A stretch of 64,000 nucleotides of DNA from Chara braunii (taxonomy: Eukaryota > Plantae > Charophyceae): positions 1,767,086 to 1,831,085 of the forward strand of contig BFEA01000027.1 of NCBI GenBank assembly GCA_003427395.1, in the 5' to 3' direction. Positions 2,715 through 59,074 of the stretch are shown here, in pieces (the first letter of the stretch is position 1; each line of letters starts with the position of its first letter). The notes below the pieces were generated by a model that saw only the letters and a program-made list of their open reading frames with translations, did no database searches and was not told the origin of the DNA. A program made the translations under genes and the position numbers.

Positions 2715-2753
2715 CCCGCATCTGTTTCTCTGGTTTGGCTTCTGTCTGAATAT

Positions 2754-2898
2754 GGGATGCTGGACCCGTTTACCAGCAGGTGATGCTCCCCACCAATAGA
2801 TGGAGCCTCTCCCCAGGTGCTAACGGTGTCTGCTCTTATCAGCACCACTAGCACTGGTGGAGACGTGTTAAAAAAATAAAAAAATAAAAATAAAAAAT
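2754..2898 (+). mobile_element. Retroposon 3' tail (pseudoknot 1, pseudoknot 2, hairpin, A-rich tail)
   Basis: GGGATGCTGGACCCGTTTACCAGCAGGTG..GCTCCCCACCAATAGATGGAGC followed by an A-rich tail. Confidence 0.75.
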
Positions 2899-3564
2899 CA
2901 AGACGGTTGGAAAAATACACTCCAAACATATGCCATACTTCTCGTTCCCACCAACCAGCTGCCAGAAGTATTTTGACTACTGAATAGATGGGAGTTACTT
3001 CACCTACTCCAACATGTGTATGTACACAAAGACGCGAGTTATACTGAATACTCATTAGGTTGTACACCACTATTTCTTTTTGTTGTAAGATGGGAGGACA
3101 AGTGGTTAACGGGGACCCCCACTTTTCGGCCCTAGGTAACGATGAATGATCCTGAAATTAGGGTTTCGGGGTCAAATTTTGTGTTTGCTTGGGATGGCCT
3201 TATGGTTTTCTTATAACTTGAGGTGAAAAATGGGGGGTCGGTTAACCTTTTCTCGATGGGAGACATGGAGGTGACAGGCAGTAATAGCGGCTTGTTTTCG
3301 CCTCTGTGGGTGTGAGAGGTGTTAGACTAGACACCGGGATAGTTGTGGCTCGGTTTTTGAGTGATCTTGTTCCTGATTGCTCCTGTTAGAAAGTAGTGAT
3401 TGGCTTATAGGCGATAGACGATGACGAGGTTGGTAGGATGGGGGGGGGGGTATCCTTCATACTAGCTCATAGCCACTGGTTAATATATTTTTCAGTTGAG
3501 GTGGGGTGAGCCCCTTGGTTGTCTGAGTTTCAGGGTTGGCTTTCATAATCGGTGAGCTATGATT

Positions 3565-6500
3565 CTTTTTTTTTTTTTTTTTTCACAAAACAAACAGCTC
3601 CATCTATTGGTGGGGAGCAACACCTGCTGGAAACCAGGTCCAGCGTCCCATAGATACAACCATATCCTCTTCATTTGGCACAAACTGGGAACCGGGCCCA
3701 GTGTCCCATCATCAGAAAATTTCATGAATGTAGACAAGGAACTACTAGAAAAATCCAAACAGCAATTAGTGGAAGTCCTTCGAATGCTCAGAACCCCTGG
3801 AAGCTACCCACAAAAAACACTCTAAAATTCTCTAATACTGTCCTCCTCCCTGCCGAGCTCTCCCAAGCCTCATGCCCCCACCCTGCTAGGTTACAGGGCA
3901 ACATGACTCACCCCAGCTCCAGCCAGCGTCGTCCCGACAGCACCCCTTGGTTTTCCCTTGGAATGCCCGGCCCAAAGCATCCCCAGATCTCTCTACCAGG
4001 CCTCACGCTCCTGCTATTAACAGGTTACAGGGCAATCCCCCAGCACCGGCCAACGTCGTTCTGGCATCGAAAAGCAAACAGATCCACGAGTAAACAGCAT
4101 CAAGGAAACTGAGACTGCTTTTGCAAGAAGTACCCAGAGTCCTAAACAATTCTCAAGACTACCAAAAATATCCAGAAACATCTCGAAACTGGCAAAGAAA
4201 CTAGGGCCCGATTGAAAAAAAAAATTGAGGTGACTATGACAAAATTCAGAAATCGACTCAGAGAAAAACCCCATCAACCCTCTACACCTCCCTCCGGCAA
4301 GACTAACTGCAACAGAGTCACCATCTCTGCTGCTGCTGTGCCATACTCCCATCCTACCAGCTAGCCCCCTTACTGATAGGACGCGTGATATCCCCCCATT
4401 TTCTTCTCCCACCCACCCTATTTTCTTCTTAAGGTACGTCAGAACACATTAAAGTAAAAAAGAGCATGGGAATAGGCCGCAGGGGTCCTGCAAATGATCC
4501 AAAAAACGTTGAAGTCCCTCACACACCCTTCCGAAGTCTTCCAAAACTGTCTTACTCCCTGCCGAGCTCTTCCAGGTCTCCCACCCCCACATCTAGCTGG
4601 GTTATAGGGCAACACGACTCACCCCAGCTCCGACCAGCGTCATCCCGGCAGTAACCCTTGGATGTCCCGTGGAATGCCCACCCCAAAGCATCCCCAGATC
4701 TCTCTACCAGGCCTCATGCTCCCGCGTTGCAGGTTACAGGGCAACTCCCCAGCACCGGCCAGCGTCGTTCTGGCATCGGACAACCGCAAATCACTGAGTA
4801 AAACAACCTCAAAGCCACCTCAGGATGAATTAGCAGGAATCTCAAAATCCTAAAGACCATCCAGGACTACCAAACAACCTAATCTTATTAAGATTTTCGC
4901 TCTAAACTTTATGAGAATGGGGGGGCCGAAACTAAAACGCCTACTATCCTAAAATCCCCCCTCATTAGACCAAGTGTCAGTCCAGGCTTTCAGTCTTCGT
5001 ATCAGGACTCACTTGATCTCATACCCCCTCTCTGCTAGGGTAACAGGGTACCACAACCCTCCCCAGTACCGACCAAACTTGTTCTGACAGTCAGGAAGTG
5101 CCTTCCTCCCTCGGCAGTTCCTGTAGCGGCAAGCCCCTAACCGGTTACAGGGTCAATACCCCAGCGCCAGCCTCGTTGGACGGTCTGGTTATGCGCTCAG
5201 CATAACTTTGCAGGCCTCAAGCTCCCCCCGGGTTACAGAGCACAAGCTCCAGCACCGGCCTGCGTCGTCCCAGCGCCGTCCTTCTAACCTACTTACCCTG
5301 ACCAACAACCCTCCTCTGTTGAGGCCCCCTTCTGCCTTCCATCCCCAATCCCAGCTTCACACCCCTAAGAAATTCCTTCAGAAGCCTAAATCTGGAAAAG
5401 GTTAAAAACGAATTTCAGGAATTCTATCTGAACCATCTTTTAGGATTTTAGAAAGAGAAAGAACGACAAATCTGGAATTTAGAATCAGAATTATTCCACA
5501 TGGAGAATGACTTCGAATGGAATTTGAAACCAAATGAGTGAGTGGATCATTTGTGATGTCCAAAATGACTTTCGATTCAGATTCCTAGAACCCCGAGGTC
5601 CCAAGAATCGTTCTGATGGTAAGTCAAAGAATACCAATTAGCAGAAACAAATCAGCGATCAAATATATGTGAAAAGAACAACGAATCTAAAATCCAGCAC
5701 CAATCGACGAAAAATTGCGAACTACCAATCGATTTTTTTTCAGAAATTTCATTTCAAAGACAGAATTACGAATTTACTGGATCAGAATTATCAGTTATAC
5801 GTGCGTGACCTATTGAAGATTCTATGTAAAAAATCCAATTAGGCAAAACACTATCAGAGAGTCTCCACCCTGGAACACGATGATAACAAGGCATAAAGAA
5901 AACCATCAAGAAGACCATCTGGCAACAAAAAATACGAAATCGTACCAGATGATCATCATATCGACTCAAGATCCAGAATCCTCGAATGAAACCCCAAATC
6001 CCTGGAAAATCACTCAGAATTGATTATGAAAACGTTAGTAGAGTTCGAAAGAGGATGCATCCAGACCACGCGTGAGTTGTATAAAAGCCAGAACTCCTAA
6101 CCCTTCTTCCTCAGCCACAAATTACCACCCCTTCCCTCTCCCCCTTCAGACCCTACCCCTGCGCTTTTGGGGGAAGCAAGATTCCCTTCCCTCCCACTGC
6201 TAACATCTTGGCTCCTTGGCTCAAAGTAAAACGCTAGCTCCAAAAGCATAATCGGCCATCTTCGACTCCACAGCATCGAAAACAGTGTGGCATCCCCTCG
6301 CCAAGGCCGTTGGTGAGTCGCCACAGGAGGTCCAACACCACCCTGCTTATACACTTACCATATTCATACCCGTGGTTGAGGAAGAGGGAAAGATTTTCAA
6401 GACGCGTTGTCTCGTCGGTAACATCATTCACAACAGAAAAAAGTCCAGCCGACATCGATTAGGATGCCGCTCCCCACCACCATGCACTTCGTCGACCTAC

Positions 6501-7152
6501 TCAGCTCCCGCCACTCCCGCTATCTAACGCGCCGTTCACGTACAAGGATTTGCATGATCACACTTCAGCAACGCTCCTCCTGCCCTAACACCCCGCCCTG
6601 CCTCCATAGAAGGCTCCATCCCCACCGTCGCCACTTCCCTCCCATCCGCTTGCTATCACACCGCGAGTTCTCCACCACTGGCTTGCTTCAGAGATTCACG
6701 CTTAAGCGCGCAGCAGCGTCTCTATTTTGGACCTGTGCCTGCCAAACAGAGCAGGATGCCCCTCCTGCCCTAGCGCCAGACACCGCCCTGCCTCCATAGG
6801 AAGCTCCATCCACAACCTCCCGTACCTCCTCCAGCGCGCCAATCCTCCGTGAGCTCGATAAAACTTCCAAGTTCGCATGATGGCTCCTCTAGCATAGGCA
6901 GGATATGGCGAGGTCAACACACACGACCGCCCTACCCATGTCAAACGCAGCTGATCGCACGCTGAGACAACCGACCTCCATCGCTACGTAGATTGACGCG
7001 CGGCAGCAACACGCCAGGTGAACGCGCCATGCGAAACCGCGCCGCAGAGACACGCCGTGTGAAGGCGCCAATCGGGCGCGTCGTGTGGCCGGGCGCAGCG
7101 CTCCCGGTAGCGCTGCGCCCTCCCTCCGCAGAACTTCATTCTCATTTTGCAC
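3565..7152 (-). mobile_element. Complete non-autonomous poly(A) retroposon: GC-rich leader, decayed short ORF, Alu-domain-like array, pseudoknot tail
   Basis: Perfect 15-bp TSD CGGTGAGCTATGATT (3550-3564, 7153-7167), poly(A) at the minus-strand 3' end, no RT motifs seen. Confidence 0.85.
3866..5263 (-). ncRNA. Array of seven SRP/7SL Alu-domain-like folds (3866-3924, 3999-4051, 4575-4635, 4710-4760, 5015-5074, 5128-5172, 5210-5263)
   Basis: Each folds as stem-helix3-UGUAA-helix4-stem, with compensatory changes between units and loop-loop complementarity in some. Confidence 0.7.
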
Positions 7153-9653
7153 CGGTGAGCTATGATTTTGTAATGGTGCTGATGTTGAATTTTGAGACCT
7201 CAGACCTGGTTCCTGGTGGGTGTTTTTTTTTTTTTTTTTTTTTTTCCCAAAAGGAAAAAAAGATGCAAGTTGCCTTCTCCTCATATGGGGGACAGCTGCA
7301 TTTTACTACTCTGTATTCTTCTCTCAATATTCTCTTTTTTTAATTCAAGCATTGGACAATGATTCCAAGACTTTGTTGCATTTCTTCAATGCGGACACAA
7401 TAACGATCATAACAATCTCCTCGTGTACCTATGCGTACATCAAATTCTACTTTGTCATAAACATTGTACGGTCCTGCTTTTCACTAATCCCAGGAAACCC
7501 CTGAACCTCTTAACATTACACCACTAAATCCCCAATCCATAGCCTGTTGTGCAGTAACAGTACCGATATCCACGAGTCGTCGTTTCCAAATACGATTATT
7601 TTTTAACATTTCTCAGACTACCTATTACACCACTAAATCTCCAATCTGTAGCCTGTTGTGCAGTAACAGTGCCAATATCTACAAGTCATCGTTTCCAAAG
7701 ACAATTATTTCTTAACATTTCTCACAATACCTACCCCAAGCTATATACTTGGGTCTTAGGGTCATGGACTACGGGAGGGAGGCAAATAATTTACTACCCC
7801 CTAAACTATCCTATAGTGGACAGAGGACGAGCCTTAAATTTACTGATCTGGACTAAAGCTATCCTAAGGTTATGGGTCTACGCCTATCTAACTCTGCTCT
7901 GTGTGGGAAGCAGCACCCACGCTCCTTACACCTGGCGCTGACAACACCCGGCAAAAAAAAACAGAATAAGTGAACCACCAGTACCTTTCGCAGGTGAAGG
8001 TTTCTGATGATTAATGTACAACCGTGATTTTCGGATGAGTAGTGCTGCCGGAGCTCAATGGCTGGCGGCGCCAGGCAAAGAAAAACAAAAGTGTGCCTGC
8101 GCCAGTCTGTTCTTTCTTGGCGCGCATAGGAAATCCCGCCGGGGAAAAGAGGCTCAGAGGTACTGGTGGTTCAAGAAAAATCTTGGAGAAAGAAGTGGTG
8201 TGCAAGAATAGAAGAACAGCAATCGAACCAAGACTTCCAACCACATGCATGAACCCTGATCCTGCCTCAATTTTCCAAAGTCTACCCTCAGGTATGCTGG
8301 AGGATAGCGCACACTCCCAAGCCCCATCCACCATACTGTTCAAGTAAGCGGAGCCCCTCCACTCTGACCGCTCTCCTCACACAAAAGAGTGCATGCTCAG
8401 CAGGACTTAACATTATTTTGAAACTGTCATCCCTGGAAGCAATGTCGTTCCACGATTGTGTCCCACCCTACACTGGAAAAAGTCAGAGGACCTATGCTCG
8501 ACAAGAGTTCGATCGCAAAACTTGACAGAGGATCAAAATAGTTTTTGTAGAGGACATTGGTTCGATGTCTGTGGGACATGCAATTGCCAGAATGGTGAAG
8601 GTGCTCTTTGATATGGTCTTCGACCACCCAGTCCCGCAACAAACTTCATCATCATCCGCAACGACAGAGCTACCCTCTACCAGGACAAAGGCACACAGCC
8701 AGGTGACCTCGTTTCAACCCAGATTGTCAGCCTCCTCTCCGACCAATCTGAGGTGGGGACAGATGAATTGGAGTGGGAAGTCCCGGGCTGTTAGGAGGAG
8801 TCAGATGACTCTGATGAGTAGGCACACAGCAGTTTCGCTATTGCTGTGTAATGGCGGTAATCAAGCGCCAGAGGCGACAGCAGCAGAGACCTCGCCGCTG
8901 AGGATACAACAGGTTAGTTCCACGACAAATGCAATGGTGTCCCTTCAGGCCAAGCTCATAGACAGAGTCCACCCTTGCTCGGACATGGCACCTGCTGCAC
9001 CTACAGACCATCAGCCCTGATCCAGGATTTGGCACAATCCCATAGCATGGTCGGCACATAAACCAGTACCTTGAGGTAAGCCGACGAATCCAATCAGGCC
9101 CTCCTCTGAGATGGACGTCCGATACCCTCCGGTTCAAGGGATTCTGGTCTTCCCAATGAAGAGGCACCCACAGTCCCAACAATGGCTGCTGGGATTGAGA
9201 CCGAATGGTTGTTTGTTTGTGGACAATGGAGTTTACAACCGCAAGGGACAATCCAATTACATGGGCCTGACTGCTGAAGGGTGGAAAGGGGACTGCTCCA
9301 GAGCAGAAACATCCAACAAGTCGAGCGCTAATGAAGTTCGACGAACAGCAGGGGATCACCAAGGTGGCCTCCCACAAGCACCCCTCTTCCCTGTCAGTAT
9401 CACCCTGGTGATTCCACTGACTGACTCAGCTTGGAATACCAACGGAAAGGAGGAGGGCCTGCTGCGGCTCTCCGGTACCTCAGGTGCACGCTTTCAGGCA
9501 AGCCCCTTGTTGGAGAACTCACTTTCGGACACCCAGAATGCCAGGGATGATCTTCCTCTGCTTATTCAACTTAGTATTCTTTTTGTCAAAATTTGTGAAC
9601 TTAGTCTGACTTTTTATCACTTTTATTTGTTTGTTTTTTACTTCATTTGTTAT

Positions 9654-12679: not shown

Positions 12680-12770
12680 GTCCTTTGGGACATCCGTTAA
12701 AATTGGAACGATACAGAGAAGGAAGATTAGCATGGCCCCTGCGCGAAGATGACACACATAAATTGAGAAA
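12680..12770 (+). pseudogene. U6: U6 snRNA retrocopy
   Basis: GTCC..GACATCCGTTAAAATTGGAACGATACAGAGAA..GATTAGCATGGCCCCTGCGC; flanking AATTCTAG duplication. Confidence 0.9.
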
Positions 12771-13718
12771 ACAATTCTAGTCCCAGAAACAAAAGCATGC
12801 AAATTTTTGCTCTTCGCTGCTACCACCAGTAGGCCCAAAACTTTTTGGATCGGGTCTCCGAATGCGCCGCCGGATATCGCTTGTCGGGGACTGGTGGTTT
12901 AAAAGGAGCTTTGAGCCTTTTTTGAGGTTCAAAACTGTAACACTTCAAAGTTCGAACACTCACAACTATTTGCACTTTTAAACCGAACAAACTACGATTC
13001 GAGCTTTGAAGTGTTACGGTCGAAAACTATAAGCACAACTATTTCCCTCATCTCAGAACTTATCCCAAACGAACTACTGGTTGAAAACTATCTCCAATTG
13101 GATTGGATCCTTTTTTAAAAGGAAAAATAATTAACCAGTAAGTTCAGTAACCTTATTTCTTCCATCTGATTTTCACCAGGATTCGAGCTCATGATTTGTT
13201 TATCAACAGTTACATGTGTAATATTACTAAGATACCATTCAGCCACACGGGCTGGGTATCTCCAATTGGATCCTGAACAAGGATGTTTTACGCTTTCCAG
13301 GAAGAGGCTCCGATCTATGATGACGTTGAGAGGTGAGCTACCTGATTGTGTTCTCTCCAAGGGGAGAGGAAAGAAAAAAACATGCTCGCTTTCCTCTGGG
13401 CGGCATTAGCCTACTTCAGACAGTCTGGATAGCCATCCCGATCTTCAAAACACGGTATCATATACTGCCATCATACCTCTGGGAATAAATGTGAGCTTCT
13501 AATGGGTCGAGCTGCAATGGAGCATGACCTCTGCCTGGCAATGTGCAGGAACAAGGATTGAGCACAAGATTCACCCTTTTTTAAATGAATTAATTATATC
13601 ATCAGTCGCTTGTCAACGGCGCAAAAATATTTCCAAACTCACACAATGCCATGCAGAAAAACCATGAGGAAAATTCAGTCCAGCTTTGCTTTTGAAACGG
13701 ATGACTCGTTAAGCTTAC

Positions 13719-13932: not shown

Positions 13933-15904
13933 CTGCATCCACACACACAGACACAATCAGTTTCATGTATGCTTGTGCTTTCTCCTTTCGTATGCATTCT
14001 TCTAATTTGTACAAGTGCTTCTTGTGTGCCCAGCTAAGCACCTCTAAGTAGTGCCAACCAGTCGGTCAGTCCTCGTTTGAAGTGCCTGCAGCACTCTGCG
14101 TGGTTCGCCCGTGATGTGAGTAGGTGATGTGCCACTTTGCTCCGTGTTGGATGTGTAGACTGCCTTGCCTTGTCTGCGCTCCGCCGCTGCCTTGCTGCCC
14201 GTCCCGCTTGCTCCGTGTGTCGTTCGTTGTGGGCTGCCATGTTCCCTGTGTGGTGTGGCTGTGGTGCTGGTGTTGCTCTGTGCTTCGCTGCACTACTGCC
14301 TTTCTGCCCATTCCCGTGCCCCGCCTTTGCGTTTGCTGCTTGTCTGCCATGTAGTGTAGCTGCTGTGTTGATGTCGCCTTGTGCTCCGCTGCGCTGTTGC
14401 TGTGCTGCTCGTCCGCTTGCCCTGTCGTTCCTAGCAGGCATTGTGCAGTTGGGTGCTCCTGGACTGTTGCCTGTTGCTTCGTTGAGTTGCTGCCTGCTGC
14501 TATGTTTGCTTGTGGACAGTCTGCCTTCAACAACGGTCAAAGGGTTCATGACCCAAACCATCAATACGGGGATTCCACAGATTGTCGAGGGTGCAGCCTC
14601 CTGACGAGTCGGTGTAACTCTGACAAAACAGTATTTCATCCTCAGTTTTTTTTTTTTTTTTTTCCCTTCGGTTTTTCTGAAACGGTTTTCACCTTTTAGC
14701 AGTAGCGGATGCAGTACCCAGGGTTCGATCCCTAGACCTCACCCTACCCATGTACAGTATCTGTGTAGACCCCGGGAATTGAACCTGTGACCTGTGTATT
14801 CGTAGGCACTTGGTAGGCCTGTCGTAGGTCCATAGGCAGCAGGGGTTCGATCTGTAGGTCTATAGCGTAGGAGTCTTAGTGAGTTCCGGAAGCTTAGCTG
14901 TAGAACTTCTAGAAGGTAGGCAAGTGGGCAAGTGGGCAAGTGGTGAGGCAAGTGGTGGACTAAACCGCAGTGCAACAGCAGTACAACGTCGGTAGGATAG
15001 CGGTGAGTCCACAGTCAGTCAGCNGAAGGTCCAGTCAGTCCCAGTCCGGTCCAGCAAGTACCACAGGGGGACTGTGAGCACCAAGGGCCGATGGCAAAGG
15101 GCAGACCAACGAGTTTCTGAAGTATAAATCAAGAGGCAGCGCCCAGCCATTCATTCATTCCTGCGTGAGCCATGCGGAAGCGCTGCCACAGCGACTTGTG
15201 CAAGGAGGTCTGCAGATGAGCCAGGAGGACACAGTGTGCAAGAGAGGAGGAGTTAGCATAGCGATAGGTTAGAGGCAGCCATAGCTGCCATAGCTGTAGT
15301 TAGTAGTGAGTGTGTGTGTGTGCTCGAGTGTTAGAGTGATGCGTGTGGGATATCCAGGGTGATCCAGTGTATGTGAACAGTGAGATGTTTGGGCGCTGAA
15401 GTCGCCATAGCCAATTGAGAGTGAACTCGTATCTGAAAGCCATATCTCTGAGTTTTGAGTGGGCGCATGTCGCAAGTATACTGCGTTGCTGTTTACATGC
15501 ATGAAAAGTGTGTTTGAGAACGCGTCCGATTGCATTTCTGACTTTTTCACCATTTTTGTCATTTGTTGGGACTTGTATTTTTTTCCCCCCCTTTCTTGTT
15601 GGCTGTGGTTTGCCCGGTTGCCGTTTGGCTCGGTGTCTTTTCCTTTTTTGTTTTGTGTTGTTTGTCTTCTCCGTGCCTTGTGCACTAGTGTGATGTCTGG
15701 TGCTATGCGTGATGACCTTTCACGTCCAATCTCAGGACTACTTCAGTTTTACCTTTGAAGTGGTTTCGCTAGTGGTGTTCGTGATTATGATACATCGGAG
15801 ATATCTTATACATGTGTACACACACATCTCTACACACACACACACATGAGTGTCATTTTGTGAGATTACCTGGATCTTACATCATCGCTTTCCAACTCAA
15901 GTGT

Positions 15905-18604: not shown

Positions 18605-19423
18605 CTGCATGGACATACCAAACCAGCAAATGCCGCATCGAATCAACTGCAGTGATTTTTGAAGTATTCTTTTCCCCAGGAAGATTAGCACTCAATATAC
18701 ATCCCCGACTTTTGCAGAACTTTTTGTCAAAACTTCTGAGCTCAAAATCGTGTCAAAGCTGCCGCCCTTCAGCCGGTAGGCCGACCCATCCAGTGGCTGG
18801 CACCATGCCTTACATGACTTTAGGACTGCATCGACAGCAGTGGTGCTTTAAACCACCAGTGCATTTCGTGTTCCGCATTTCTCTGACGCCACACGCCATG
18901 TGCCACATGCCGCGTCCTTCAGGATGTACTGACCTGCCAATCAGCGCATTATTCATTCAGGAAAAAACAGGGCCGTGCATGCAACAGTTTTGCCTGGATG
19001 TATTTTCCAACACACGGGGGGAGTCCCGTACATCCCGAAGAACGTGGCACGTGCACGGCTACGTCTCAAAATTTGCCCATGAAAACTCTGGTGGTCTGAG
19101 GACTGCATCAGCATGCCTTGTGCAGTGGATACCGACATCAAATGACACTCCAAAAGTTCCAAAACTATATGTTTACTCTCTTGTGCCTGCAAAGAACATG
19201 AGCGGAGAACTTCAATAACCCTCCTCAGCACCACGTGTGACTCAGAAAATAAACAGCGCAGAGACAGAGCAGGCGCAGGATTGCATCTTATATTGCAAAT
19301 GAAAGGCAATGCCAGTTGGCAAAAAAAAGGAATACTATTTTCCGGTTGAGGCTCATGCGTTGGTCGAGACACAACGATGTCGTCTCCGTTACCACTAGAG
19401 GCAGATGCCTTTCTTCCTTTTTA

Positions 19424-19460
<37 letters not shown>

Positions 19461-20728
19461 TAAGTTTTATCTAAGGCTTACCAAGCGCAGCAAGTTACCA
19501 GCAAAGACCACAGATCAGATATTAAACTGATTGGAACCGATACTACACTTGATCTATTTTTAGCCAAAAGGTCGAGAAAGGTATTTCTGCCGACAAACTC
19601 ACTTTCTGGCAACCTTTGAAATCCCGACAAACTCACTTTCTTTGAGTTCCGTGTCCAGCAATTAGTAGGCACCTATCTTACAAGGCTGTCCCTGCTGGAC
19701 TGTCCACCCAGACTGTCAAGCCCAGACAGCTCTGCATGCACTTGACCGGAAAGCTGGGACTAGTGGGAACAGGCTGAGGGAGACATCTTTTCAGTCTAAA
19801 TGGCGCCTAAATCTGAGTGTGCGGGGTTCAATGGGGGCCAAAGGGGTATAAAGGGACGTTAAAAGAGGTTAACGACTTTACAGGAGTGCATTAGACGTTA
19901 AAAGAGGTTAACGACTTTACAGGAGTGCATTACCATGCATGAATTTTTTTTCTTTCACAGAAAAAAAAAAGAAGTGGATGTTCATAAGGAGTTTTGAGGT
20001 GACACTCACCCAAACTTTTTTCTTTTTTTTATCTATTTTTTCATCAAATTGACCCAGTAAGGGACAACAATTTCTAATTAGGACCGTGCATAGGCGGTGT
20101 GGACCATCTGTTCCTAACTTCCCAGCATTCCCGCCCATCACACTCTTTGTGCATATGGCTTTTTAGAAAGATACGCTTGTCAGTTGCTCTCAGATTCAAA
20201 TCAGATAAGACGCCCTTTCGTTTTCTGATTGCAGTCAGCAGGAGGGGACGGACGCTGGGCCCGCTTCGCAGCCTTATAGCACGCTTCCATTTTCAGTCAC
20301 CTTTTAGATGTTTCCCTGCAATCGATGGGATGCTGGACCCGGTTTCCAGCTTCATAGCATCATTTTCCCCTCTTTGATCACCATGCACTACCGTCTTCCC
20401 CCGAACACAACGCACCCTCATTTTGGCTGTACCATGACCGGAAAGACAGCTCATGTACATTCGTTACCAGGGTGCGTTGTGTTTGGGGGAAGATGGTAGG
20501 TTAAAGCGATTGTAAAGTACGCCTGCATGTGTGAGTCTCTCATTGTTAGAATCATTAGAGTTGGCTGTTTTCTCTGCTGCTCTTCCTGTCATCTCTACAC
20601 CCCGGCGACCCCCCTTCTGAACCTGGCCGAGGATGCCTCGTTCACTACGTGGACCACACAACATTTGTGAGGGACGCCAAAACATTTCCTGGCTTGTATG
20701 ATAAAAAAGAGGAAAGCGATTCCCATGC

Positions 20729-21818: not shown

Positions 21819-22653
21819 NNNNNNNNNNNNNNNNNNNNNNNNNNNNNNNNNNNNNNNNNNNNNNNNNNNNNNNNNNNNNNNNNNNNNNNNNNNNNNNNNN
21901 NNNNNNNNNNNNNNNNNNNNNNNNNNNNNNNNNNNNNNNNNNNNNNNNNNNNNNNNNNNNNNNNNNNNNNNNNNNNNNNNNNNNNNNNNNNNNNNNNNNN
22001 NNNNNNNNNNNNNNNNNNNNNNNNNNNNNNNNNNNNNNNNNNNNNNNNNNNNNNNNNNNNNNNNNNNNNNNNNNNNNNNNNNNNNNNNNNNNNNNNNNNN
22101 NNNNNNNNNNNNNNNNNNNNNNNNNNNNNNNNNNNNNNNNNNNNNNNNNNNNNNNNNNNNNNNNNNNNNNNNNNNNNNNNNNNNNNNNNNNNNNNNNNNN
22201 NNNNNNNNNNNNNNNNNNNNNNNNNNNNNNNNNNNNNNNNNNNNNNNNNNNNNNNNNNNNNNNNNNNNNNNNNNNNNNNNNNNNNNNNNNNNNNNNNNNN
22301 NNNNNNNNNNNNNNNNNNNNNNNNNNNNNNNNNNNNNNNNNNNNNNNNNNNNNNNNNNNNNNNNNNNNNNNNNNNNNNNNNNNNNNNNNNNNNNNNNNNN
22401 NNNNNNNNNNNNNNNNNNNNNNNNNNNNNNNNNNNNNNNNNNNNNNNNNNNNNNNNNNNNNNNNNNNNNNNNNNNNNNNNNNNNNNNNNNNNNNNNNNNN
22501 NNNNNNNNNNNNNNNNNNNNNNNNNNNNNNNNNNNNNNNNNNNNNNNNNNNNNNNNNNNNNNNNNNNNNNNNNNNNNNNNNNNNNNNNNNNNNNNNNNNN
22601 NNNNNNNNNNNNNNNNNNNNNNNNNNNNNNNNNNNNNNNNNNNNNNNNNNNNN

Positions 22654-23873: not shown

Positions 23874-23960
23874 GTCCTTCGCGACATCTGCCAAAATCGG
23901 AACAAAGAATGCAGAGAAGATTAGCATGATGGCCCCTGTGCACGGGTGATACAATTGAAA
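23874..23960 (+). pseudogene. U6: Degenerate U6 snRNA copy
   Basis: CAGAGAAGATTAGCATG..GGCCCCTG core followed by a poly(A) run. Confidence 0.8.
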
Positions 23961-24124
23961 GCAGAAAAAAAAAAAAAAAAAAAAAGTCTGCCAAGAATGT
24001 TACTGAACAGCGAACAGTGAATAGTGACCACTCTTTTGCTCTAGAGATCCTCCAACGCGGAAACATGAAAAGAAGTTCAAAAAAGCTGTTTCACTTTTCT
24101 TTCTCAATAAATAATTTGGGATTA

Positions 24125-24224
24125 TTTGGACCATTTCTCGATTCATGTGTGTCATCCTTGTGCAGGGGCCATGCTAATCCTCTCTCTCTGTGTCATTCCA
24201 ATATTAACGGATGTCCCGAAGGAC
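24125..24224 (-). pseudogene. U6: Near full-length U6 snRNA copy
   Basis: Reverse complement reads GTCCTTCGGGACATCCG...GATTAGCATGGCCCCTGCACAAGGATGACAC...GAGAAATGGTCCAAA. Confidence 0.9.
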
Positions 24225-24231
24225 TGCTTTA

Positions 24232-25603
24232 TGTTACGATCCTGGCCACTTTTGAAGTCCACAATCATCAGAAAGTACAATGTTGTCCAATTGCGAAAAG
24301 AAATGAATGAACTTGAGCCCAATGNCGTCCAATTGCAAAAGAAATGAAAGAACTTGAGAGGAGAGAGAGGGAAANAAGAAGAAGAAGAATTAAGAAAGAA
24401 GAAAGAGATGATGTACTCCAGCATAGACCAAAGACAAAGCTCTTCTTCTTCGCTCAACAACCTCCTCCTCTTTATCTCCTCCTCTCTTATTCAACAATAA
24501 ATAAACAATAATAATGTTGAACAGCTGAACCAGAATCAATGTCCGAATCCCACTTCTACTGCAGGCACAAGATGAGGTCCACCATAGCCATGGCAGCCCT
24601 TCTTCTTCCTCCACATACAGGCCGAGGCTATGGCGGACAACTGAGGCCTCAGCCTCCGGTACNAAAGACAACCCCAAGCAGCTACACCGCTGCCCTTCTT
24701 CAAGCTCATCACCCAGCAGCTATACCGCTGCCCACTCAACCGCCATGCCTGACTCTGTCCGAGCTTCCTTGATGCGGCACTACCCCCACTGGGGCCTTCC
24801 TGATGCAGCGCCTAGCAAGGAGATAAAGATGGTGTCTACCATAGCCAGTAAGTACCTCGCCACTCTCCTCCTTGGTCCCCTTCTCCCTCCTCCTCCTACC
24901 GGTAGAGCTCCACCATAGCCAAGGTGGAAGCTCCCGGCTTCTTCCTCCCAGCAGCGCTGTAGTGCCCAGCGCTACACCACCTAGCGCTCCAGCAGCGTGA
25001 CGCCCAACTCGCACACTGAAGAATGAGGCGGAGCTCTAGCCTCCGCCTCTAGATATAGCGGCCTGCTTGCCTCTTGGGCGGTGACTTCCAGGCCGCTCGG
25101 CCTCTCCAAGCAACCGGTACTTCCTCCGTTTCGGAGGGAAACATCATTGCAGACCCTGATATTACCCGTACAGGCTCTAGACTCAGACTGGTTGGACTGG
25201 TACCGGCCTAGACCTACCCTACCGCTACTGGACTCTAAAAATGCCAACTGCAGTGGGGTGCAGTATCGGCCTACCGGCCTACTTGAGTGTTTTTCCCCTA
25301 CCCCAAGGGCCTCAGGGCCGCTAGCTCCGCCACTTCAGTGTTTTTCCCTGCTACAACCCTCAATGCCACGGCCACAGGTAAGTACCGCCCCTACGGGCCT
25401 ACCAAACAAGCAATTACCCTTGCGGGTCACACACGCACTCATACCGACAAGCACTCAGACAGGCATGCAGGTCACAAGCACACACCCAGAGACAGACTTA
25501 GAAAACACAGCAGAATGCGGGAATCTCATCAAGGCATCCATTCCATCGGCAGAACTTCAGAAATCAGCAGTGTTCTCAGTCTGTGTTTTGACGGGTCATT
25601 ACA
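24232..25603 (-). repeat. 3' LTR of the chromovirus
   Basis: TGTTACGATCC...GGTCATTACA; near-identical to 32100-33580 outside the gap. Confidence 0.95.
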
Positions 25604-25617
25604 CTACCCCCCCCTCA
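25604..25617 (-). promoter_or_regulatory. Polypurine tract
   Basis: G-rich purine tract (GAG8TAG on minus) immediately before the 3' LTR. Confidence 0.9.
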
Positions 25618-25644
25618 AGAGCGAGGTCCCTTCGAGCGAGTAAC

Positions 25645-28600
25645 TCAATCAGAGTCCTTGCATAGTGCATCATAGGCGTAGATAGCAAAGAGAGATCGCG
25701 CGTGTTCCGTAGGAGTCAGGGTAGCAGTGAATTTTGGTTGCTGTTCAGCACTTATCAACCGTTCATAGGCATTCACGACACGCGGTGCACTCTGCAGCAA
25801 GTCTTTCCTAGCAATCCAATAGAAATCGTCCAACGGATGGTACAGAAAATGGACTTTGTACTGTCTGTTTCTTCCCTTCCCACTGTGTTCGACAATCCTA
25901 TCAACCTCATGTCCACCATTGATTGCACGGGGAATCATTGACTCTCGGTATTTGAAAGTCTCAGGTGATTCATACGGAAACAACTTTGACGCATGAAAGA
26001 CTGGGTATGTGCGCAAATGTGCAGGCACATCAATCGTGTAAGAAGGACCGAAGGAATCACTTCCTACCTGGTTCAAGACCTGCCACGGACCGTAGTACTG
26101 AGGAAGAAGTTTTCGTGATACACCTTCTTCTTCAGAAAACTCAGACATTTTGACCCAAACATAACTTCCCATTGTGAAAGGCGCAGGCTGGCGCTTCTTG
26201 TTTGCATGTTTGATCATGGCACTGCGTCGCCTTTCCATAGCTGCGACAGCAACCTTGAGCAACCGATCGTACTTAGCGCTGTAGCCTGGCTGGCCAGGTG
26301 TCAGACCAGGAGGCTGTTCCGGGAACAGGTAGGATAGAGGATTGCGAATTTTCCATCCAAGATGCAGTCGGTTAGGCGTCATCCCGGTGGAAGAGTGGAT
26401 GGAGTTGTTATACAACCCCTGCACGATTGGCAATTCCTCATCTCAAGAGTTCTGATCAGGCACAATTAAGGCTCGGAGAAGTTGTATCACCGTCTGGTTG
26501 ATCTCCTCGGCCAGTCCATTGGCTTCGGGATGTCGACCAGTTGTCATCTTGAGTTTCATGTCATAGACCTGGGAGGTGAAGTCCTTCCATTCTGCGCTTA
26601 TGAACCTAGTGTCCCGGTCACTCACAAGAGTTTCCGGGGGCCCACACTGCAGAATGTATCTTTTGTGAAACTCTTTGATAACAAGGTCAGTTGGGGCATG
26701 AGGTGGTAGTGGAACACATTCAAAAACTTCGAAAAACGATCGACAATCACCATAACTTGGGAATAACCGTTTCTGCTCTTCTTCCCCATGTCCGTGAAGT
26801 CAATAGAAACAGACTCCCCCGGACCGTCAGGAATAGGAAGAGGGTGCAGCAGCCCATAAGGCTTCTGCCGAGACGGTTTAATGCGTTGACAAACTTCACA
26901 CTCAGCCACAAACCTTCGCGCCATCCTTTTCATACCAGGCCACACAAACTTTTCCAACAGATTCCCGTATGTCTTCTCAACACCGAAATGTCCACTCCGG
27001 CCATGAGCCAAATCCAAGAAGTGAGTGATGATTGGCTCATGGTTGGGTACACACAACCGGTCATGCTTACCGTAGCGTCGGAAGAGAAGGCCCTTACAGT
27101 CATGGAAATCAGGCTGACTACTAGGGTCAGCCCGAATCTGCTCAAGGATGGGACTGAGTTCCGGATCCGTGGCAGTGTGCTCAATGAGTTCCTTCTGTAA
27201 GTCCTTGCGAAGATCGTAGGAAACCACTAGGCAAGTCATGTACTCAGGGTGGCGAGACAAAGCATCCGCAACACGATTATAGCAGCCTTTCTTGTGTTTT
27301 AGTTCAAAATCGTACACATCAATCTCATGCAGCCAGCGGGTCAGCGTAGTTGATGGGTTTATCTGTGTCTAAATCCACTTCAAAGTCTCATGATTCGAGA
27401 ACACTTTGAAATGGCGACCCAAGAGGTAGTGTTTCCAATGGTCTAGTGCCTCTCTCAAGGCATAGAGCTCTCTCATGTAAGTGGAGGCAGCTACCTTGTG
27501 GCTGGGCATGNGTTTGCTGTAGTATTCCAGCGGACGTAAACCATCACCATCATCTTGCTGCAGCACTGCACCAATCCCATACAAACTTGCATCCGTAGTT
27601 ACTACGAATGTAAGCTTGGGATCTGCAATGCGGAGCACCGGATGACTCACCAAAGCCTCCTTTAGTGCTTCGAAGGTTGTCATGCACTCCTCATCCCATG
27701 TATAGGACACATTCTTGCTGGTTAGTCTAGACAATGGACGGGCAATGATTTAGGCACAAACTTACGGTAGTACGACGCAAGACCAAGAAAAGAATGCAAC
27801 TCGCGGACATTCGCAGGTTGGGCCCAGTTTTGAATGACCTCAACCTTGGTTGCCTCGGGCTCTAGGCCTGCAGCAGACAACCGATGTCCAAGGTAGATGA
27901 CGCTGTCCCTCCCAAACTCAGATTTCTCCAAGTTGAGATGGAGTTGCGCGTCCTTGAGGATCTGCATCACTTCCTCAAGGTGTCTCATGTGCTCCTCCAT
28001 TGATTTGTTGAAGATAAGAATGTCATGCAGATATACAACAACAAATCGGTTGATCTGATTGCGAAACACTTTGTCCATGAGACTTTGAAAGGTGGCTGGT
28101 GCATTCGTGAGACCGAAGGGCATAACTGTAAACTCATACAGCCCATCGCGAGTTTTGAATGCAGTTTTGTGTTGTTCTGCAGGTTCGACCTCAATCTGGT
28201 GGTAGCCATACTTGAGATCAATCTTGCTGAAGACTTTGCAACCACCTGCAGCATCAAGCAGATCATCGATACGTGGCAAAGGGTATGCATTCTTTCTTGT
28301 GATTCTATTCAATCTGCGGTAGTCAGTACACATCCGCAGTTTGCCTCCCTTCTTAGGAACAAACAACACTGGTGCACCAAATTCAGACTCACTGGGTTTG
28401 ATCCATCCCTTCCCAATCATCTCATCAATCTGTCGTCGCAACTCCTCCAATTCGCCTGAGCCCATTCGATAGACACAGCCTTTTGGAGGGGTGCTACCTT
28501 CAATCAACTCGATTTTGTGTCGGACCGGTCGCACGGGAACTCCATGCGGTTCGGCCAAGACCTCAGGGAACCGGTTGAGAAGGTTGCGGATTTCNGGTGG

Positions 28601-29009
28601 GATTTNNGGAGGGGGATCATCACTCTCAGGAGCCAGCATACCAGATTGCATAGGTGCAGCCAAGACAACAGATTTTGCAGCAGAATCACTTGGACTAGAG
28701 ATGGATTTAGTAGAGGTAGAAGTAGCTTCCGAGGTGGAAACAAACCAGCTTCGTTCTCCCTTGCGCGCGTTCTTGCTTCATATGAGCCCAGCGCGTCAAC
28801 AGAGCATGGAAGTCAATCTCTTCCGAATCTACCCAAGGCTCTTTATATAGGATGTGGATTTTCTCAGCCTTGGAATCAGCATCAGATGGGGTCTTAGGAG
28901 AAGTTTGCTGAGTGGGATCAGAATCCAGAGAAGGAGTGATACTTACATGTTCAGCCTCTCCATCTGTAGAGTGTGCCGATGATGCCTCTACCCCCGTTGT
29001 TGGTTTCCC
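25645..29009 (-). pseudogene. pol: Disrupted pol: RT, RNase H, integrase, chromodomain
   Basis: LRMCTDYRRLN, MPFGLTNAPATFQ, YLHD (YLDD mutated), TDAS, H..H/CEVC zinc finger, SIDF, SDRD, GPW and chromodomain, split by frameshifts and stops. Confidence 0.93.
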
Positions 29010-30655
29010 TGCTGCAATCTAAAGCATTGTTGGACTGAATGTCCCAGTTTGGTGCAATGCAGGCAAACCCCTTTCTTCACCCTGTGTTTCCACTCGCTTT
29101 CACTGATCCGAAGATCTACCCATGGTTTTGTGGCAGGATTTTCCGGTTTGGGTGGAATTTTTGCCCCCTTAGGAAGAAGAATAGTGTTAGTGTTGTTCTT
29201 CATTGTGGTCCTTGGTCCCTTACTCTTAAAGGCAGTCTTCTTAAAGGCATTCATGGATTCTTCATCATTCACATACTCAGACTCATGGGCTGACAAAGAG
29301 CAAGATGCCCCGCAGTCTTGCGCTTGATCGTCATCAAGAGAAGATTCATCTACGAGGGTCTCCTCTTCAGCCTCAAGCAGATCATGTGTTGCAAAACGGT
29401 TGCTGCCTGAAAACCGTTTGCGGCTGGTGGCCTTTTTGCCACTTGATCCACCCGGGAGGTCTTGTGCCTCCAGCTTGACTAAGTCAAGCATGCGGGTAAG
29501 CCAATCTGTATATCCGCTGAGCCCGAGCCCTAGGCGATCTTTTAGAGTAGAGGGGACTGTTCCTTTTATCACATCCAAACAGGACTGCGCAGTCATCTCC
29601 AGATCCGGAGTAGCAAAGAGTTTACTCACATACTGCTGCAGAATGTGCATGGTGCCGGTCCACTTGATGTGCTTGAGTTTATCAAGCTTGAGTCTTGCTT
29701 TAGCTGCAGCATGTGGATCAGCGTATTGTTTAATCAAGAGATCCTCAAATGCGGCAGTAGGCGTAACCTTCAACCATTTGTTCAGGTCTATTCTCTTATA
29801 GCCTGATTGGACAGCTTGGGTTTCCAAGAAACCTCTCACGACGGGCTCCACATTGGTCCCTAGGATAGACGACTGAGTGGACGGGGGTGTCCCCAACACG
29901 TCAAAGTAGGATCGCATGGAGCTGATCCAAGACTCGACGTCGTCCTTTCCGTCATACTTGGACGGAATCTGCGCCGCCTTCCTGTCGATGTAAGCAAAGC
30001 TGCCGCCTGGCCCAGCCATTGCTGGGTCCGGGCCCGGGGCTGCAACAGTTCCAAAAGTCCCTGCACCACCACTTGCCGCTGCGGCAGCAGCAGCAGCAGC
30101 AGCAGCGGGGTCTGGACCTGCTGCAGATCCACTTTGGCTGTTAACCACACTCAAAGAAGAAGAAGAAGTAGAAGGAGAAGAAGTAGACGTAGTCAGAGGA
30201 GCAAAACTGGACTGACACGCAGCATTGGAGGCAGGGTAGGTGAGTGAAGAGACGATTTGAGCCTGCTGCGAACTAGCAAACTGTTGCAGCTGATCGCGGT
30301 GCTGCTGCGCCATCTTGGCCATGTCTTCGCGCAACTCCTTGAGCTGCTTAAACACCTGTGCGAGTTGGCCAGTATGGTCCTCAGCAACCCTAACCCCTGC
30401 TAAGTCTCTGAGGAGGGGAACCGTTTTCTCTTCTACCTCCTCATCAGTCAGAGCGGACACGGTGCTAAGGACGGCCTCGTGAGCCTGCACCTTATCCTTT
30501 CTCTCTCTCTCTTTCTCTTCCTCCTCCCTCTTCAAGGCTTTCTCGTAGAAGAACTGATACTGCGGTTTTTCTGCCTCAGGGGCAGTGTCCATTTGCAGTT
30601 TCCAATCTGCTGCAGATGCCATGATGGAGGATGAGGGTGTCAGTAAGACTCTCAA
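28988..30655 (-). CDS. gag: Gag (capsid domain plus CCHC zinc knuckle)
   Basis: Open 555-aa ORF containing IPSKYDGKDDVESWI and CLHCTKLGHSVQQC. Confidence 0.9.
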   Translation of the reverse strand: MRVLLTPSSSIMASAADWKLQMDTAPEAEKPQYQFFYEKALKREEEEKERERKDKVQAHEAVLSTVSALTDEEVEEKTVPLLRDLAGVRVAEDHTGQLAQVFKQLKELREDMAKMAQQHRDQLQQFASSQQAQIVSSLTYPASNAACQSSFAPLTTSTSSPSTSSSSLSVVNSQSGSAAGPDPAAAAAAAAAAASGGAGTFGTVAAPGPDPAMAGPGGSFAYIDRKAAQIPSKYDGKDDVESWISSMRSYFDVLGTPPSTQSSILGTNVEPVVRGFLETQAVQSGYKRIDLNKWLKVTPTAAFEDLLIKQYADPHAAAKARLKLDKLKHIKWTGTMHILQQYVSKLFATPDLEMTAQSCLDVIKGTVPSTLKDRLGLGLSGYTDWLTRMLDLVKLEAQDLPGGSSGKKATSRKRFSGSNRFATHDLLEAEEETLVDESSLDDDQAQDCGASCSLSAHESEYVNDEESMNAFKKTAFKSKGPRTTMKNNTNTILLPKGAKIPPKPENPATKPWVDLRISESEWKHRVKKGVCLHCTKLGHSVQQCFRLQQGNQQRG

Positions 30656-59019: not shown

Positions 59020-59074
59020 CGCTGGGGCGAGTTGTGCCACCCTGTAACCCGTTACAATGCGGGAGCATCGGGCC
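59020..59074 (+). ncRNA. Isolated SRP Alu-domain-like fold
   Basis: GCT-GGGGC-GAGTTGT-GCCACCC-TGTAA-CCCGT-TACAAT-GCGGG-AGC; the loops GTTGT and ACAAT are complementary. Confidence 0.65.

Follow-up and report, generated by a model that had tools for sequence, protein, structure and literature searches.

Is the fold that recurs inside a Chara braunii retroposon the Alu domain of SRP (7SL) RNA, and what could such a domain do for the element that carries it? The question arises from a 64-kb stretch of C. braunii DNA (here called the window), for which an original prediction had described seven tandem SRP Alu-domain-like folds with covariation, lying in the 3' UTR of a retroposon.

A retroposon with seven dispersed units

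We found that the carrier is a genuine non-autonomous retroposon with the marks of a LINE-type insertion, namely, a poly(A) tail (A18) and 15-nt target-site duplications (Table 1). It had thus been named correctly as a retroposon. The "3' UTR" label does not apply, as no credible ORF is present in the element. No long ORF was found in it (minus-strand ORFs lying wholly inside reach at most 131 aa), nor was an ORF for RT or EN; Pfam scans, run on larger ORFs in other parts of the window, detected reverse transcriptase and integrase only in a gypsy element at 25 to 31 kb. That Ty3/gypsy reverse transcriptase is 80 to 90% identical to Chara braunii proteins, in agreement with the plant-lineage host that had been proposed. 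A spurious 145-aa ORF over u6 and u7 retrieved nothing when used as the query for other copies. T-runs are numerous on the sense strand of the retroposon. A tRNA origin was rejected, as ARAGORN finds no tRNA and there is no tRNA match in Rfam. The window also contains five U6 copies and one U2 pseudogene-like copy.

Table 1. Positions of the retroposon, its parts, and the Alu-like units in the window
Feature	Positions	Strand	Remarks
Retroposon, 3,587 nt (3.59 kb)	3566..7152	minus	5' end 7152, 3' end 3566; flanked by 15-nt direct repeats, ends in A18
5' target-site duplication AATCATAGCTCACCG	7153..7167	minus	read directly; same letters as 3' copy
5'-terminal segment, also repeated in the genome	7028..7152	minus	DNA depth 6,539; 30-nt palindrome at 7091-7120
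u1, short type	5210..5268	minus	UGUAA 5237-5233; MFE fold is the three-way junction
u2, degenerate short type	5121..5178	minus	UGUAA 5149-5145; alignable with other units
u3, long type	5012..5082	minus	UGUUA 5045-5041; MFE fold is the three-way junction
Dimer core A, conserved (u4, spacer hairpin 4671-4695, u5)	4555..4785	minus	
u4, short type, left monomer of dimer A	4707..4768	minus	UGUAA 4738-4734; MFE fold is the junction
u5, long type, right monomer of dimer A	4572..4643	minus	UAUAA 4606-4602
Dimer core B, conserved (u6, spacer hairpin 3960-3984, u7)	3846..4076	minus	
u6, short type, left monomer of dimer B	3996..4059	minus	UGUAA 4029-4025; MFE fold is the junction
u7, long type, right monomer of dimer B	3863..3932	minus	UGUAA 3895-3891
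3' cassette, ~55 nt, common to other poly(A) retroposons	3597..3652	minus	candidate RT-recognition element
Poly(A) tail, A18	3566..3583	minus	
3' target-site duplication AATCATAGCTCACCG	3550..3564	minus	read directly
Lone divergent Alu-like unit outside the element	59021..59074	plus	R1 23.8 bits, R2 14.2 bits

The seven units (u1 to u7) are 58 to 72 nt long each and lie on the minus strand within 3863 to 5268, in the 3' half of the retroposon. They sit 1.9 to 3.3 kb from its 5' end and do not constitute a 5'-end 7SL head with a Pol III promoter. The predicted number of units was right, but they are dispersed, at spacings of ~90 to 650 nt, and not tandem. The unit at 4710 to 4760 reads exactly as had been quoted. 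The quoted outer stems were located in u4 and u6 (GGCC/GGCC), u5 (GGTC/GACC), and u1 (GCAGGCC/GGCCTGC), the inner stems in u4 (TGCT/AGCA) and u3 (TACT/GGTA), helix 3 GAGC/GCTC in u1, and the loop letters in u4 (GTTG:CAAC) and u6 (ATTG:TAAT). Dimers A and B are ~230 nt each and lie 710 nt apart. Core A is 85% identical to core B and ~80% identical to positions 107 to 467 of contig L014, and the flanks are far less conserved. The two dimers arose by internal duplication, and the three remaining units are older singles.

The same units are present in C. braunii contig BFEA01000182.1 and in contig L014. A metagenome scan with a 20-nt unit pattern gave 41 loci, among which only L014 is a true relative; the other matches were dismissed as chance occurrences in G+C-rich bacterial contigs. 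In the lone unit outside the element, the loops UUGU and ACAA are complementary, and no Rfam match was found for it. DNA depth was 1e4 to 1.4e5 over the units versus ~50 in the 5' half of the element (40 to 62 at 6398 to 7027, which adjoins the repeated 5'-terminal segment). These depths suggest that the units are far more repeated in the genome than is the 5' half. In poly(A)+ RNA, sense-strand module reads dominate in two of three libraries, and the unique 5' half of the window copy had no RNA reads.

Over the whole window, DNA depth peaks at the 3' cassette. This sequence is found in at least six other elements, with 88 to 92% identity to 2751-2806(+), 50078-50126(-), 62275-62318(+), and 63297-63345(+) of the window, to L014:622-672, and to L167:15716-15762. 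Neither the window nor the Chara loci examined contained an RT-encoding LINE with the cassette, and the ORFs beside each of the cassette copies, in L167 as in the window, had either no Pfam match or gypsy parts. We also considered whether the units are variants of the cassette and rejected this, as local alignment scores were not above those of shuffles (p of ~0.08 to 0.85).

A fold conserved on the sense strand

Each unit is laid out as a closing stem, a 3-bp helix 2, helix 3, UGUAA, and helix 4. We observed that RNAalifold recovers this three-way junction from MAFFT alignments that are blind to structure. Across 12 units from three sources, 97.6% of the pair cells are paired, versus 31 to 59% when the partners are slid, and two-sided changes occur at five pairs (12 cells); because the 12 units are related, these covariation counts are inflated by shared ancestry. 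None of 500 shuffles matched the observed pairing, the two-sided cells, or the covariation score. The sense strand pairs in 93.6% of cells and the antisense strand in only 73%, an asymmetry that comes about through 32 G.U cells, and the fold recurs among units that are just 60 to 75% identical. The fold has been conserved through compensatory change and belongs specifically to the sense strand. It had been proposed that pairing is kept while sequence changes; the two-sided changes, the alignment folding, the slid controls, and the shuffles bear this out and place it beyond chance.

These data also speak to the possibility that there is no functional RNA structure and that a G+C-rich repeat with self-complementary runs merely looks folded. 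Such a repeat would fit the folding energies of single units, which are no better than those of shuffles (z of -1.2 to +0.7), and the recurrent GCUGG and GGCC motifs, which permit many pairings. However, pairing drops when partners are slid, the two-sided changes fall mainly within the predicted stems, and the strand asymmetry and the recurrence of the fold in divergent units point the same way. We therefore regard the absence of a functional structure as very improbable.

No part of the units is as well conserved as the U-turn block. Its UGUNR motif reads UGUAA in five of the seven window units and in all five further units; u3 has UGUUA and u5 has UAUAA. Nearly all reads carry G at 4605, however, which restores UGUAA in u5. 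The closing stem of u7 is GGCU/GGCU in the window copy, whereas the reads mostly give GGCC/GGCC, with the change at 3866 in nearly all reads and that at 3921 in a variable share. Helix 3 of u1 (GAGC/GCUC) is a two-sided change, and in u2 erosion has affected both the closing stem and helix 4.

The apical loops and the closing stem behave less uniformly. The loop pair GUU:AAC of u4 becomes AUU:AAU in u6 and in L14A, a change from G-C to A-U. Short-type units have 3 to 6 nt of loop-loop complementarity (shuffle p of 0.02 to 0.22 each, in few units), and long-type units have just 2 to 3 nt. The closing stem, formed with the upstream strand, has 4 to 7 bp, is 96 to 100% paired, and shows one two-sided change; it is mutually exclusive with an upstream hairpin that is itself 97.5% paired. 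In the dimer context, RNAalifold favors other long-range pairings. An alternative long-range helix in the right monomer is just 72% paired across units, and we set it aside as a possible dimer conformer only.

Likeness to the SRP Alu domain

In the SRP Alu domain, a UGUNR U-turn motif stands between helices 3 and 4 (PMC2905702, PMC11581171). The Chara units have the corresponding features: helix 2 is 3 bp long, helix 3 is closed by an invariant G.U, helix 4 starts with CC, a GUAA linker completes the UGUNR motif, and the junction linkers are 0, 4, and 0 nt. The same layout is found in the Rfam Metazoa_SRP and Archaea_SRP consensus structures and in bacterial SRP RNAs. There is also a short likeness to a plant sequence. 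The hop 7SL primer TGTAACCCAAGTGGGGG (17 nt, PMC3709999) and the long-type unit L14B (L014:312-381) have UGUAACCCA...GUGGGGG in common, and u5, which reads UAUAACCCA...GUGGGGG, fits the primer given the read-majority G at 4605.

We then compared the units with Rfam SRP covariance models. With Metazoa_SRP, u7 scored 19.4 bits (E of 0.022; gathering score, 70) and u5 scored 15.3 bits (E of 0.34), the latter over model positions 1 to ~50 with the S domain skipped; with Archaea_SRP, u4 scored 14 bits (E of 0.11; gathering score, 96.5). The best Rfam matches of these three units all belong to the SRP clan and all begin at model position 1. At E up to 10, neither L014 unit had an Rfam SRP match, nor did u1 to u3 or the lone unit at 59021. 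Full-length Rfam models penalize the absent S domain, and in a whole-window scan at E up to 10 even u7 was lost through the filters. The covariance-model comparison thus came out as predicted in that the best matches are SRP-clan families, and it fell short in that the thresholds were not reached (19.4 versus 70 bits). For the S domain (helices 6 and 8, with the SRP54 and SRP19 sites), the window has no above-threshold match to any SRP family, and the weak Rfam SRP matches skip model positions ~65 to 280; both observations agree with the earlier statement that no S domain is present.

A model limited to the Alu domain (R2) was built from seven Rfam-certified Bacteria_large_SRP RNAs. Over 86.7 kb, its top seven places are all units, from 24.9 bits (E of 0.0014) down to 14.2 bits; the E-values are rough, coming from a shortened calibration, and one match only is below 0.01. 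The top match is u4, followed among the window units by u3 (17.8 bits; E of 0.054) and u6 (14.9 bits); R2 was weak on u5 (8.1 bits), and u1, u2, and u7 are not among the matches listed. In 90.6 kb of other Chara DNA, used as a control, the maximum was 11.1 bits. The reverse test used a covariance model of the units (R1). Its two best matches in 79 kb of bacterial DNA are nucleotides 11 to 56 of two certified SRP RNAs.

Could the junction instead be an unrelated structured module, one that binds some other factor (LINE ORF1p or RT, or an RNA-stability or localization factor) and resembles SRP RNA by convergence or coincidence? The sub-threshold and unstable Rfam scores would allow this, as would the shortness of the common signature (GGGG, CCCUGUAACC, and a CC..GG helix), the existence of alternative helices, and the lack of a helix 5 equivalent. 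However, a model made from SRP RNAs alone puts seven units first with a clean negative control, and the reverse search arrives at SRP Alu domains. SRP RNAs of three domains of life have the same junction linker lengths and the same G.U closure, the helix 4 flanks are the same as in a plant 7SL sequence, and the units have no significant similarity to the 3' cassette. We consider a chance or convergent resemblance to be quite unlikely. On the evidence of sequence comparison, then, the units do resemble the SRP Alu domain, though only to a modest degree. The identification with that domain stands as far as architecture and R2 matches go and is not carried by the Rfam gathering scores. The predicted module reproduces the 5' domain (helices 2 to 4) of the SRP (7SL) Alu domain, without helix 5 or the 3' domain.

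A possible role and comparison with known systems

The SRP9/14 heterodimer binds the first ~50 nt of 7SL RNA at the U-turn, and a G-to-C mutation in the U-turn lowers Alu retrotransposition by 88% (PMC11581171). The Alu fold is kept in independent SINE1 lineages, which has been read as functional (PMC7245038). We think it probable that the units are internal Alu-domain modules of a non-autonomous Chara retroposon, derived from host 7SL RNA and binding SRP9/14 for LINE capture. The module would have originated as a captured piece of the cytosolic 7SL RNA of the host, and internal duplication would then have turned one unit into a dimer and, in the end, into seven units. By analogy with primate Alu and rodent B1, it would bind the SRP9/14 heterodimer, and this binding may stabilize or export the RNA and bring it to translating ribosomes. 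There, the 3' cassette and the poly(A) tail could allow the nascent reverse transcriptase of a partner LINE to take up the RNA.

A 7SL-derived fragment could also be a passenger: acquired once (for example, by RT template switching, which would also have scattered the U6 and U2 copies) and duplicated without aiding mobility, its pairing reflecting recent common ancestry or a general selection for stable RNA. Small-RNA capture is common here, as judged from the five U6 copies and the one U2 pseudogene-like copy in 64 kb. The inter-unit spacer is conserved as well as the units are, which fits simple coinheritance, and the window copy has decayed (UAUAA in u5, erosion of u2, and G.U pairs in u7). 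However, the older, diverged singles u1 and u3 and units of other subfamilies (L168 and 59021) retain the fold, with two-sided changes in the closing stem and in helices 3 and 4. The U-turn block is conserved above all else, the loop pairs appear to covary, and where the window copy has decayed the read-majority letter restores the canonical motif. We judge a mere passenger to be unlikely, and we continue with the SRP9/14-binding module as the preferred reading.

Retroposons derived from 7SL RNA have been reported only in supraprimate mammals and hagfish, and the repeated conservation of the Alu fold has been taken as a sign that SRP9/14 binding promotes retroposition (PMC7245038, PMC10886601, PMC13023118). 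We tentatively put forward a broader proposal, which is possible but less secure than the preferred reading itself. It holds that Alu-domain hitchhiking arose independently in Chara, for the first time outside vertebrates, in the form of a self-multiplying internal SRP9/14-binding module. Up to seven copies in each presumably Pol II-made RNA would dock it at ribosomes for the LINE RT and drive one of the most abundant repeat families of Chara. If the units do act in this way, a charophyte Alu-domain family would provide a natural replicate of the SRP9/14 strategy at a much greater distance, with a different layout: internal multimerized modules, a specific 3' cassette, and probably Pol II transcripts. 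The generality of SRP9/14 ribosome docking as a route to LINE parasitism would become testable, as would the minimum Alu-domain parts needed for docking and any titration of SRP9/14 or effect on translation by such RNAs in plant-lineage cells. The unit family is also an aid to annotating a major repeat family of the large Chara genome.

A nonmammalian counterpart is SINE1-1_EBu of hagfish, likewise an Alu-domain retroposon whose fold is kept by compensatory changes. It originated independently, and a partner that is not L1 relaxed mobilizes it through a shared 3' part (PMC7245038). SINE1-1_EBu is short and typical of SINEs, and its single 7SL head contains a 3' 7SL segment and has clear 7SL identity (PMC7245038), whereas the Chara modules are multimerized and their descent from 7SL is inferred.

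SRP (7SL) RNA itself has the same junction of helices 2, 3, and 4, the UGUNR U-turn, and a helix 3 likewise closed by G.U; the complementarity of its apical loops has a probable counterpart in the Chara units. The Chara element differs in lacking helix 5, the 3' domain, and the S domain and in having a helix 3 of only 4 bp in the short type; it is not an SRP RNA gene. Plant tRNA-derived SINEs (SINE2) are likewise nonautonomous, LINE-dependent elements of the plant lineage, but the Chara element has no tRNA-like part. The SVA elements of hominids are kilobase-sized, noncoding, LINE-dependent composites, presumably transcribed by Pol II, that combine Alu-like pieces with internally duplicated modules. 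The Alu-like pieces of SVA are antisense fragments that are not thought to fold as Alu domains; the composite build is the same in Chara, but the units there are sense oriented and structurally intact.

Like the Chara element, primate Alu and rodent B1 have Alu-domain folds without an S domain, including two nonidentical monomers joined as a dimer, and show LINE-type insertion (poly(A) and target-site duplications) and very high copy number. In contrast to these SINEs, the Chara folds are internal, beginning ~1.9 kb from the 5' end, and there is no 5' head with Pol III A and B boxes. The Chara units hold only the 5' domain (helices 2 to 4), with a short local stem replacing helix 5. The Chara element carries up to seven such units together with a specific 3' cassette, and its host is a streptophyte alga.

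Units and their carrier element

We found seven related units of 58-72 nt each on the minus strand within 3863-5268 (see table). The original prediction of seven tandem folds was right in number, and its spelling of the unit at 4710-4760 agreed exactly with the sequence. The units do not form a strict tandem array, however: a dimer occurs twice, as u4+u5 and as u6+u7 (~230 nt each, 85% identity, 710 nt of separation), and in each copy a short-type left monomer is followed by a conserved spacer hairpin and then by a long-type right monomer. Helix 3 has 4 bp in the left monomers and up to about 7 bp in the right ones. The spacer hairpins are as conserved as the units. The other three, u1, u2 and u3, are older singles, more diverged than the dimer units.

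The carrier element, whose 3' half holds the units, ends in A18 and has the identical 15 nt AATCATAGCTCACCG on both flanks. Together, the tail and the flanking repeats are the signature of LINE-mediated insertion. There is no credible open reading frame (ORF) in the element (longest, ≤131 amino acids), and thus the earlier label of 3' UTR for the unit region is a misnomer. The 3' cassette, which comprises the last ~55 nt before the tail, shares 88-92% identity with the termini of at least four other poly(A) elements from the window and with those of two elements on other contigs. Because no reverse transcriptase (RT)-encoding LINE bearing the cassette was found in the window or the other contigs examined, we infer, rather than observe, that it is a LINE tail. 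A 264-amino-acid ORF with no Pfam match runs straight into a further cassette copy at 2751-2806; this element represents a second type of retroposon that lacks RT, here with an orphan ORF.

The window also contains five U6 copies, which are of the plant type, and one U2 snRNA copy. They are diverged from one another, have unrelated flanks, and are not preceded by a plant USE box. The copies have the look of retro-pseudogenes, suggesting that LINE RT often captures small RNAs in the Chara genome. Many Chara braunii proteins share 80-90% identity with the RT of the Ty3/gypsy chromovirus, and this identifies the host. A back-to-back Tn5/Nextera mosaic-end pair, CTGTCTCTTATACACATCT then AGATGTGTATAAGAGACAG, is most likely a library-adapter chimera remaining in the assembly. 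Two type III hammerhead ribozyme matches (29.2 and 22.1 bits; gathering score, 48.5) may be retrozyme-like elements or chance. Low-GC bins and overlapping 250-510-amino-acid "ORFs" at the N runs were rejected as gap artefacts.

Features of the window and of two other contigs, with scores under the bacterial Alu-domain model R2 (E-values rough) and complementary loop bases
Feature	Position	Strand	Description	R2 bits	R2 E	Loops
u1	5210-5268	minus	single
u2	5121-5178	minus	single
u3	5012-5082	minus	single	17.8	0.054
u4	4707-4768	minus	left monomer, short type	24.9	0.0014	GUU:AAC
u5	4572-4643	minus	right monomer, long type
u6	3996-4059	minus	left monomer, short type	14.9	0.24	AUU:AAU
u7	3863-3932	minus	right monomer, long type
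Lone unit	59021-59074	plus		14.2	0.36	UUGU:ACAA
L168a	BFEA01000182.1		short type	20.5	0.013
L168b	BFEA01000182.1		short type	15.6	0.17
L14A	BFBZ01010938.1			16.9	0.084	AUUG:CGAU
Spacer hairpins	4671-4695; 3960-3984	minus	between monomers
Upstream hairpin	4757-4773	minus	example at u4
Carrier element	7152-3566	minus
3' cassette	3597-3652	minus	ahead of poly(A)
Repeated segment	4256-4381		within carrier
Second retroposon	1989-2898	plus	A-rich tail 2869-2898
U6 copies	12680-12784; 23874-23981; 33851-33951	plus
U6 copies	24120-24224; 41042-41142	minus	A-run after the second
U2 copy	19358-19584	minus
Hammerhead-like	14579-14634	plus	29.2 bits, sub-threshold
Hammerhead-like	51184-51238	minus	22.1 bits, sub-threshold
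Chromovirus	25081-30655	minus	gag-like ORF, RT, integrase, SH3_Tf2-1, chromodomain; frame breaks
Mosaic-end pair	59601-59638		in ~24-nt tandem repeat 59430-59790
N runs	21819-22653; 32235-32864; 55943-56697		assembly gaps
L168 element	BFEA01000182.1:12500-14070		two ~520-nt blocks

Pairing and covariation

The predicted stem variants were all present (three outer-stem versions, two inner-stem versions, and helix 3 as GGG/CCC or GAGC/GCUC), as were the loop sequences GUUG:CAAC and AUUG:UAAU. The unconstrained minimum-free-energy fold is the three-way junction in u1, u3, u4 and u6, and RNAalifold gave the same topology both for 9 and for 12 units aligned by structure-blind MAFFT. The set of 12 comprised the seven of the carrier, the lone unit, two from L014 (metagenome contig BFBZ01010938.1) and two from L168 (C. 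braunii contig BFEA01000182.1). In this set, standard pairs filled 97.6% of pair cells, compared with 31-59% when the 3' partners were slid 1-3 columns, two-sided changes affected 5 of 14 pairs (12 cells), and 0 of 500 shuffles equalled the units in pairing, in two-sided cells or in covariation score; the units are paralogues whose shared ancestry inflates these counts, which are supportive and no formal test. Covariation was clearest in helix 4, where one pair occurs as C-G, U-A or U-G and its neighbor as G-C, A-U or U-A. Because 32 cells are G.U, the fold is strand specific (93.6% pairing in sense versus 73% in antisense). Single-unit folding energy is ordinary (z, -1.2 to +0.7), as it might be if there were no real structure; next to the slid-partner controls, we regard that reading as very improbable.

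Just upstream of each unit, an equally well-paired 5-bp hairpin (GYCRG / 7-nt loop / YUGGY; 97.5% paired among the units) competes with the closing stem, whose 5' strand it overlaps. This hairpin shows one-sided variation only, and represents either a structural switch or an alternative way to read the same bases. In the whole-dimer context, RNAalifold favors other long-range partners for helix 2. The helix 3/UGUAA/helix 4 core is untouched by both alternatives. The apical loops of short-type units are complementary over 3-6 nt, with a G-C to A-U exchange between u4 and u6 or L14A (composition-preserving shuffles, p 0.02-0.22 per unit). Long-type loops allow just 2-3 pairs, the range in human 7SL. 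The case for a loop-loop contact in the units is suggestive.

Likeness to the SRP Alu domain

The unit layout matches the consensus lines of Rfam Metazoa_SRP and Archaea_SRP and bacterial SRP RNAs. Units and SRP Alu domains share a 3-bp helix 2 directly abutting helix 3, an invariant G.U pair closing helix 3, a 4-nt GUAA linker completing UGUNR, and a helix 4 that begins CC and directly abuts the returning helix 2 strand. According to reviews, the hallmarks of the Alu domain are the UGUNR U-turn and a contact between the loops of helices 3 and 4, and SRP9/14 has its site in the first ~50 nt of 7SL (PMC2905702, PMC11581171).

The proposed check against Rfam SRP models gave weak SRP matches, all far under gathering scores: Metazoa_SRP to u7 (19.4 bits, E 0.022) and u5 (15.3 bits, E 0.34), and Archaea_SRP to u4 (14 bits, E 0.11). 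All three matches run from model position 1 and leave out the S domain. No Rfam SRP match was found for u1-u3, the lone unit or L014. In a reverse search, R1, a covariance model of the units, was run on 79 kb of bacterial DNA collected via an S-domain motif. Its best two matches were nt 11-56 of two Rfam-certified Bacteria_large_SRP RNAs; their E-values (0.3 and 0.8) are nonsignificant alone, and the location carries the weight. R2, for which the sole input was the helix 2-4 segment of seven certified bacterial SRP RNAs, was run with filters off on both strands of the window, L014 and L168 (86.7 kb). Ranks 1-7 were units throughout, full length and on the correct strand, and the maximum in 90.6 kb of other Chara DNA was 11.1 bits; the shortened calibration makes the E-values rough, and the ranking and control are independent of it. 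The low Rfam scores would suit an unrelated structured module that binds something else, which we consider improbable beside the R2 ranking.

A published hop 7SL primer, TGTAACCCAAGTGGGGG (PMC3709999), and the long-type unit of L014 (L14B) agree in the U-turn and the flanks of helix 4, UGUAACCCA...GUGGGGG. In u5 these flanks match as well if position 4605 is taken as G, the letter in most reads. Following helix 2, the segment UGAGGCC-UGG also resembles human 7SL (UGAGGCUGG), which we offer as a lead and not as a test.

Family, reads and proposed origin

Members of the unit family also occur on L168, where two single short-type units belong to a poly(A) retroposon from a different subfamily. 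They lie one per block among (ATC)n microsatellites, both have G.U/U.G in helix 2 in place of G-C/C-G, and the element finishes with another 3' tail variant plus a long A-rich tail. Summed DNA-contig depth was 1e4 to 1.4e5 across the carrier's units versus 40-62 in its 5' half; depth is no copy number, and the ratio, >1000-fold inside one stretch, indicates that the units are a very abundant repeat. At non-canonical sites in this copy, nearly all reads have the canonical letter: that G at 4605 gives UGUAA in u5, and in u7, GGCC/GGCC results from C at 3866 and, in part of the reads, at 3921. DNA joints in reads, such as 5116 to 4690, point to module shuffling between family members, and the L168 element bears this arrangement out. 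A further highly repeated segment, at 4256-4381 (depth, 3.7e4), has a match at L014:1119-1168. The ends of L014 repeat each other over 94 nt (1-94 and 1553-1646), suggesting that a repeat was assembled as a circle; an inverted repeat (572-598/716-745) flanks the 3' cassette and poly(A) of L014, whose module order is untrustworthy.

In two of three libraries, first mates of poly(A)+ RNA reads at the units mapped chiefly to the plus strand, which under usual stranded protocols means minus-strand, sense RNA. No RNA reads fell on the carrier's unique 5' half. This copy looks silent, with the unit RNA reads coming from relatives. The non-canonical sites of this copy would fit a passenger, a 7SL-derived fragment without a role; with the canonical letters kept in the reads, we think this unlikely. 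We favor, with moderate confidence, a mimic of the 7SL Alu 5' domain that was most probably captured from host 7SL RNA, retained by selection and multiplied within a LINE-dependent retroposon family. By analogy with Alu, B1 and hagfish SINE1, the module is predicted to bind SRP9/14, and the bound state would serve RNP stability, export or ribosome docking beside the nascent LINE protein.

Papers from 2020 to 2026 know 7SL-derived SINEs only from supraprimates and hagfish (PMC7245038, PMC10886601, PMC13023118), and we found no plant or Chara equivalents in the literature searched. SINE1 elements begin with a 7SL head that supplies a Pol III promoter and also carry a 3' 7SL segment; the Chara element has neither. 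Because these two SINE1-defining features are missing, we place the element outside SINE1 and regard it as putatively Alu-like in its working.
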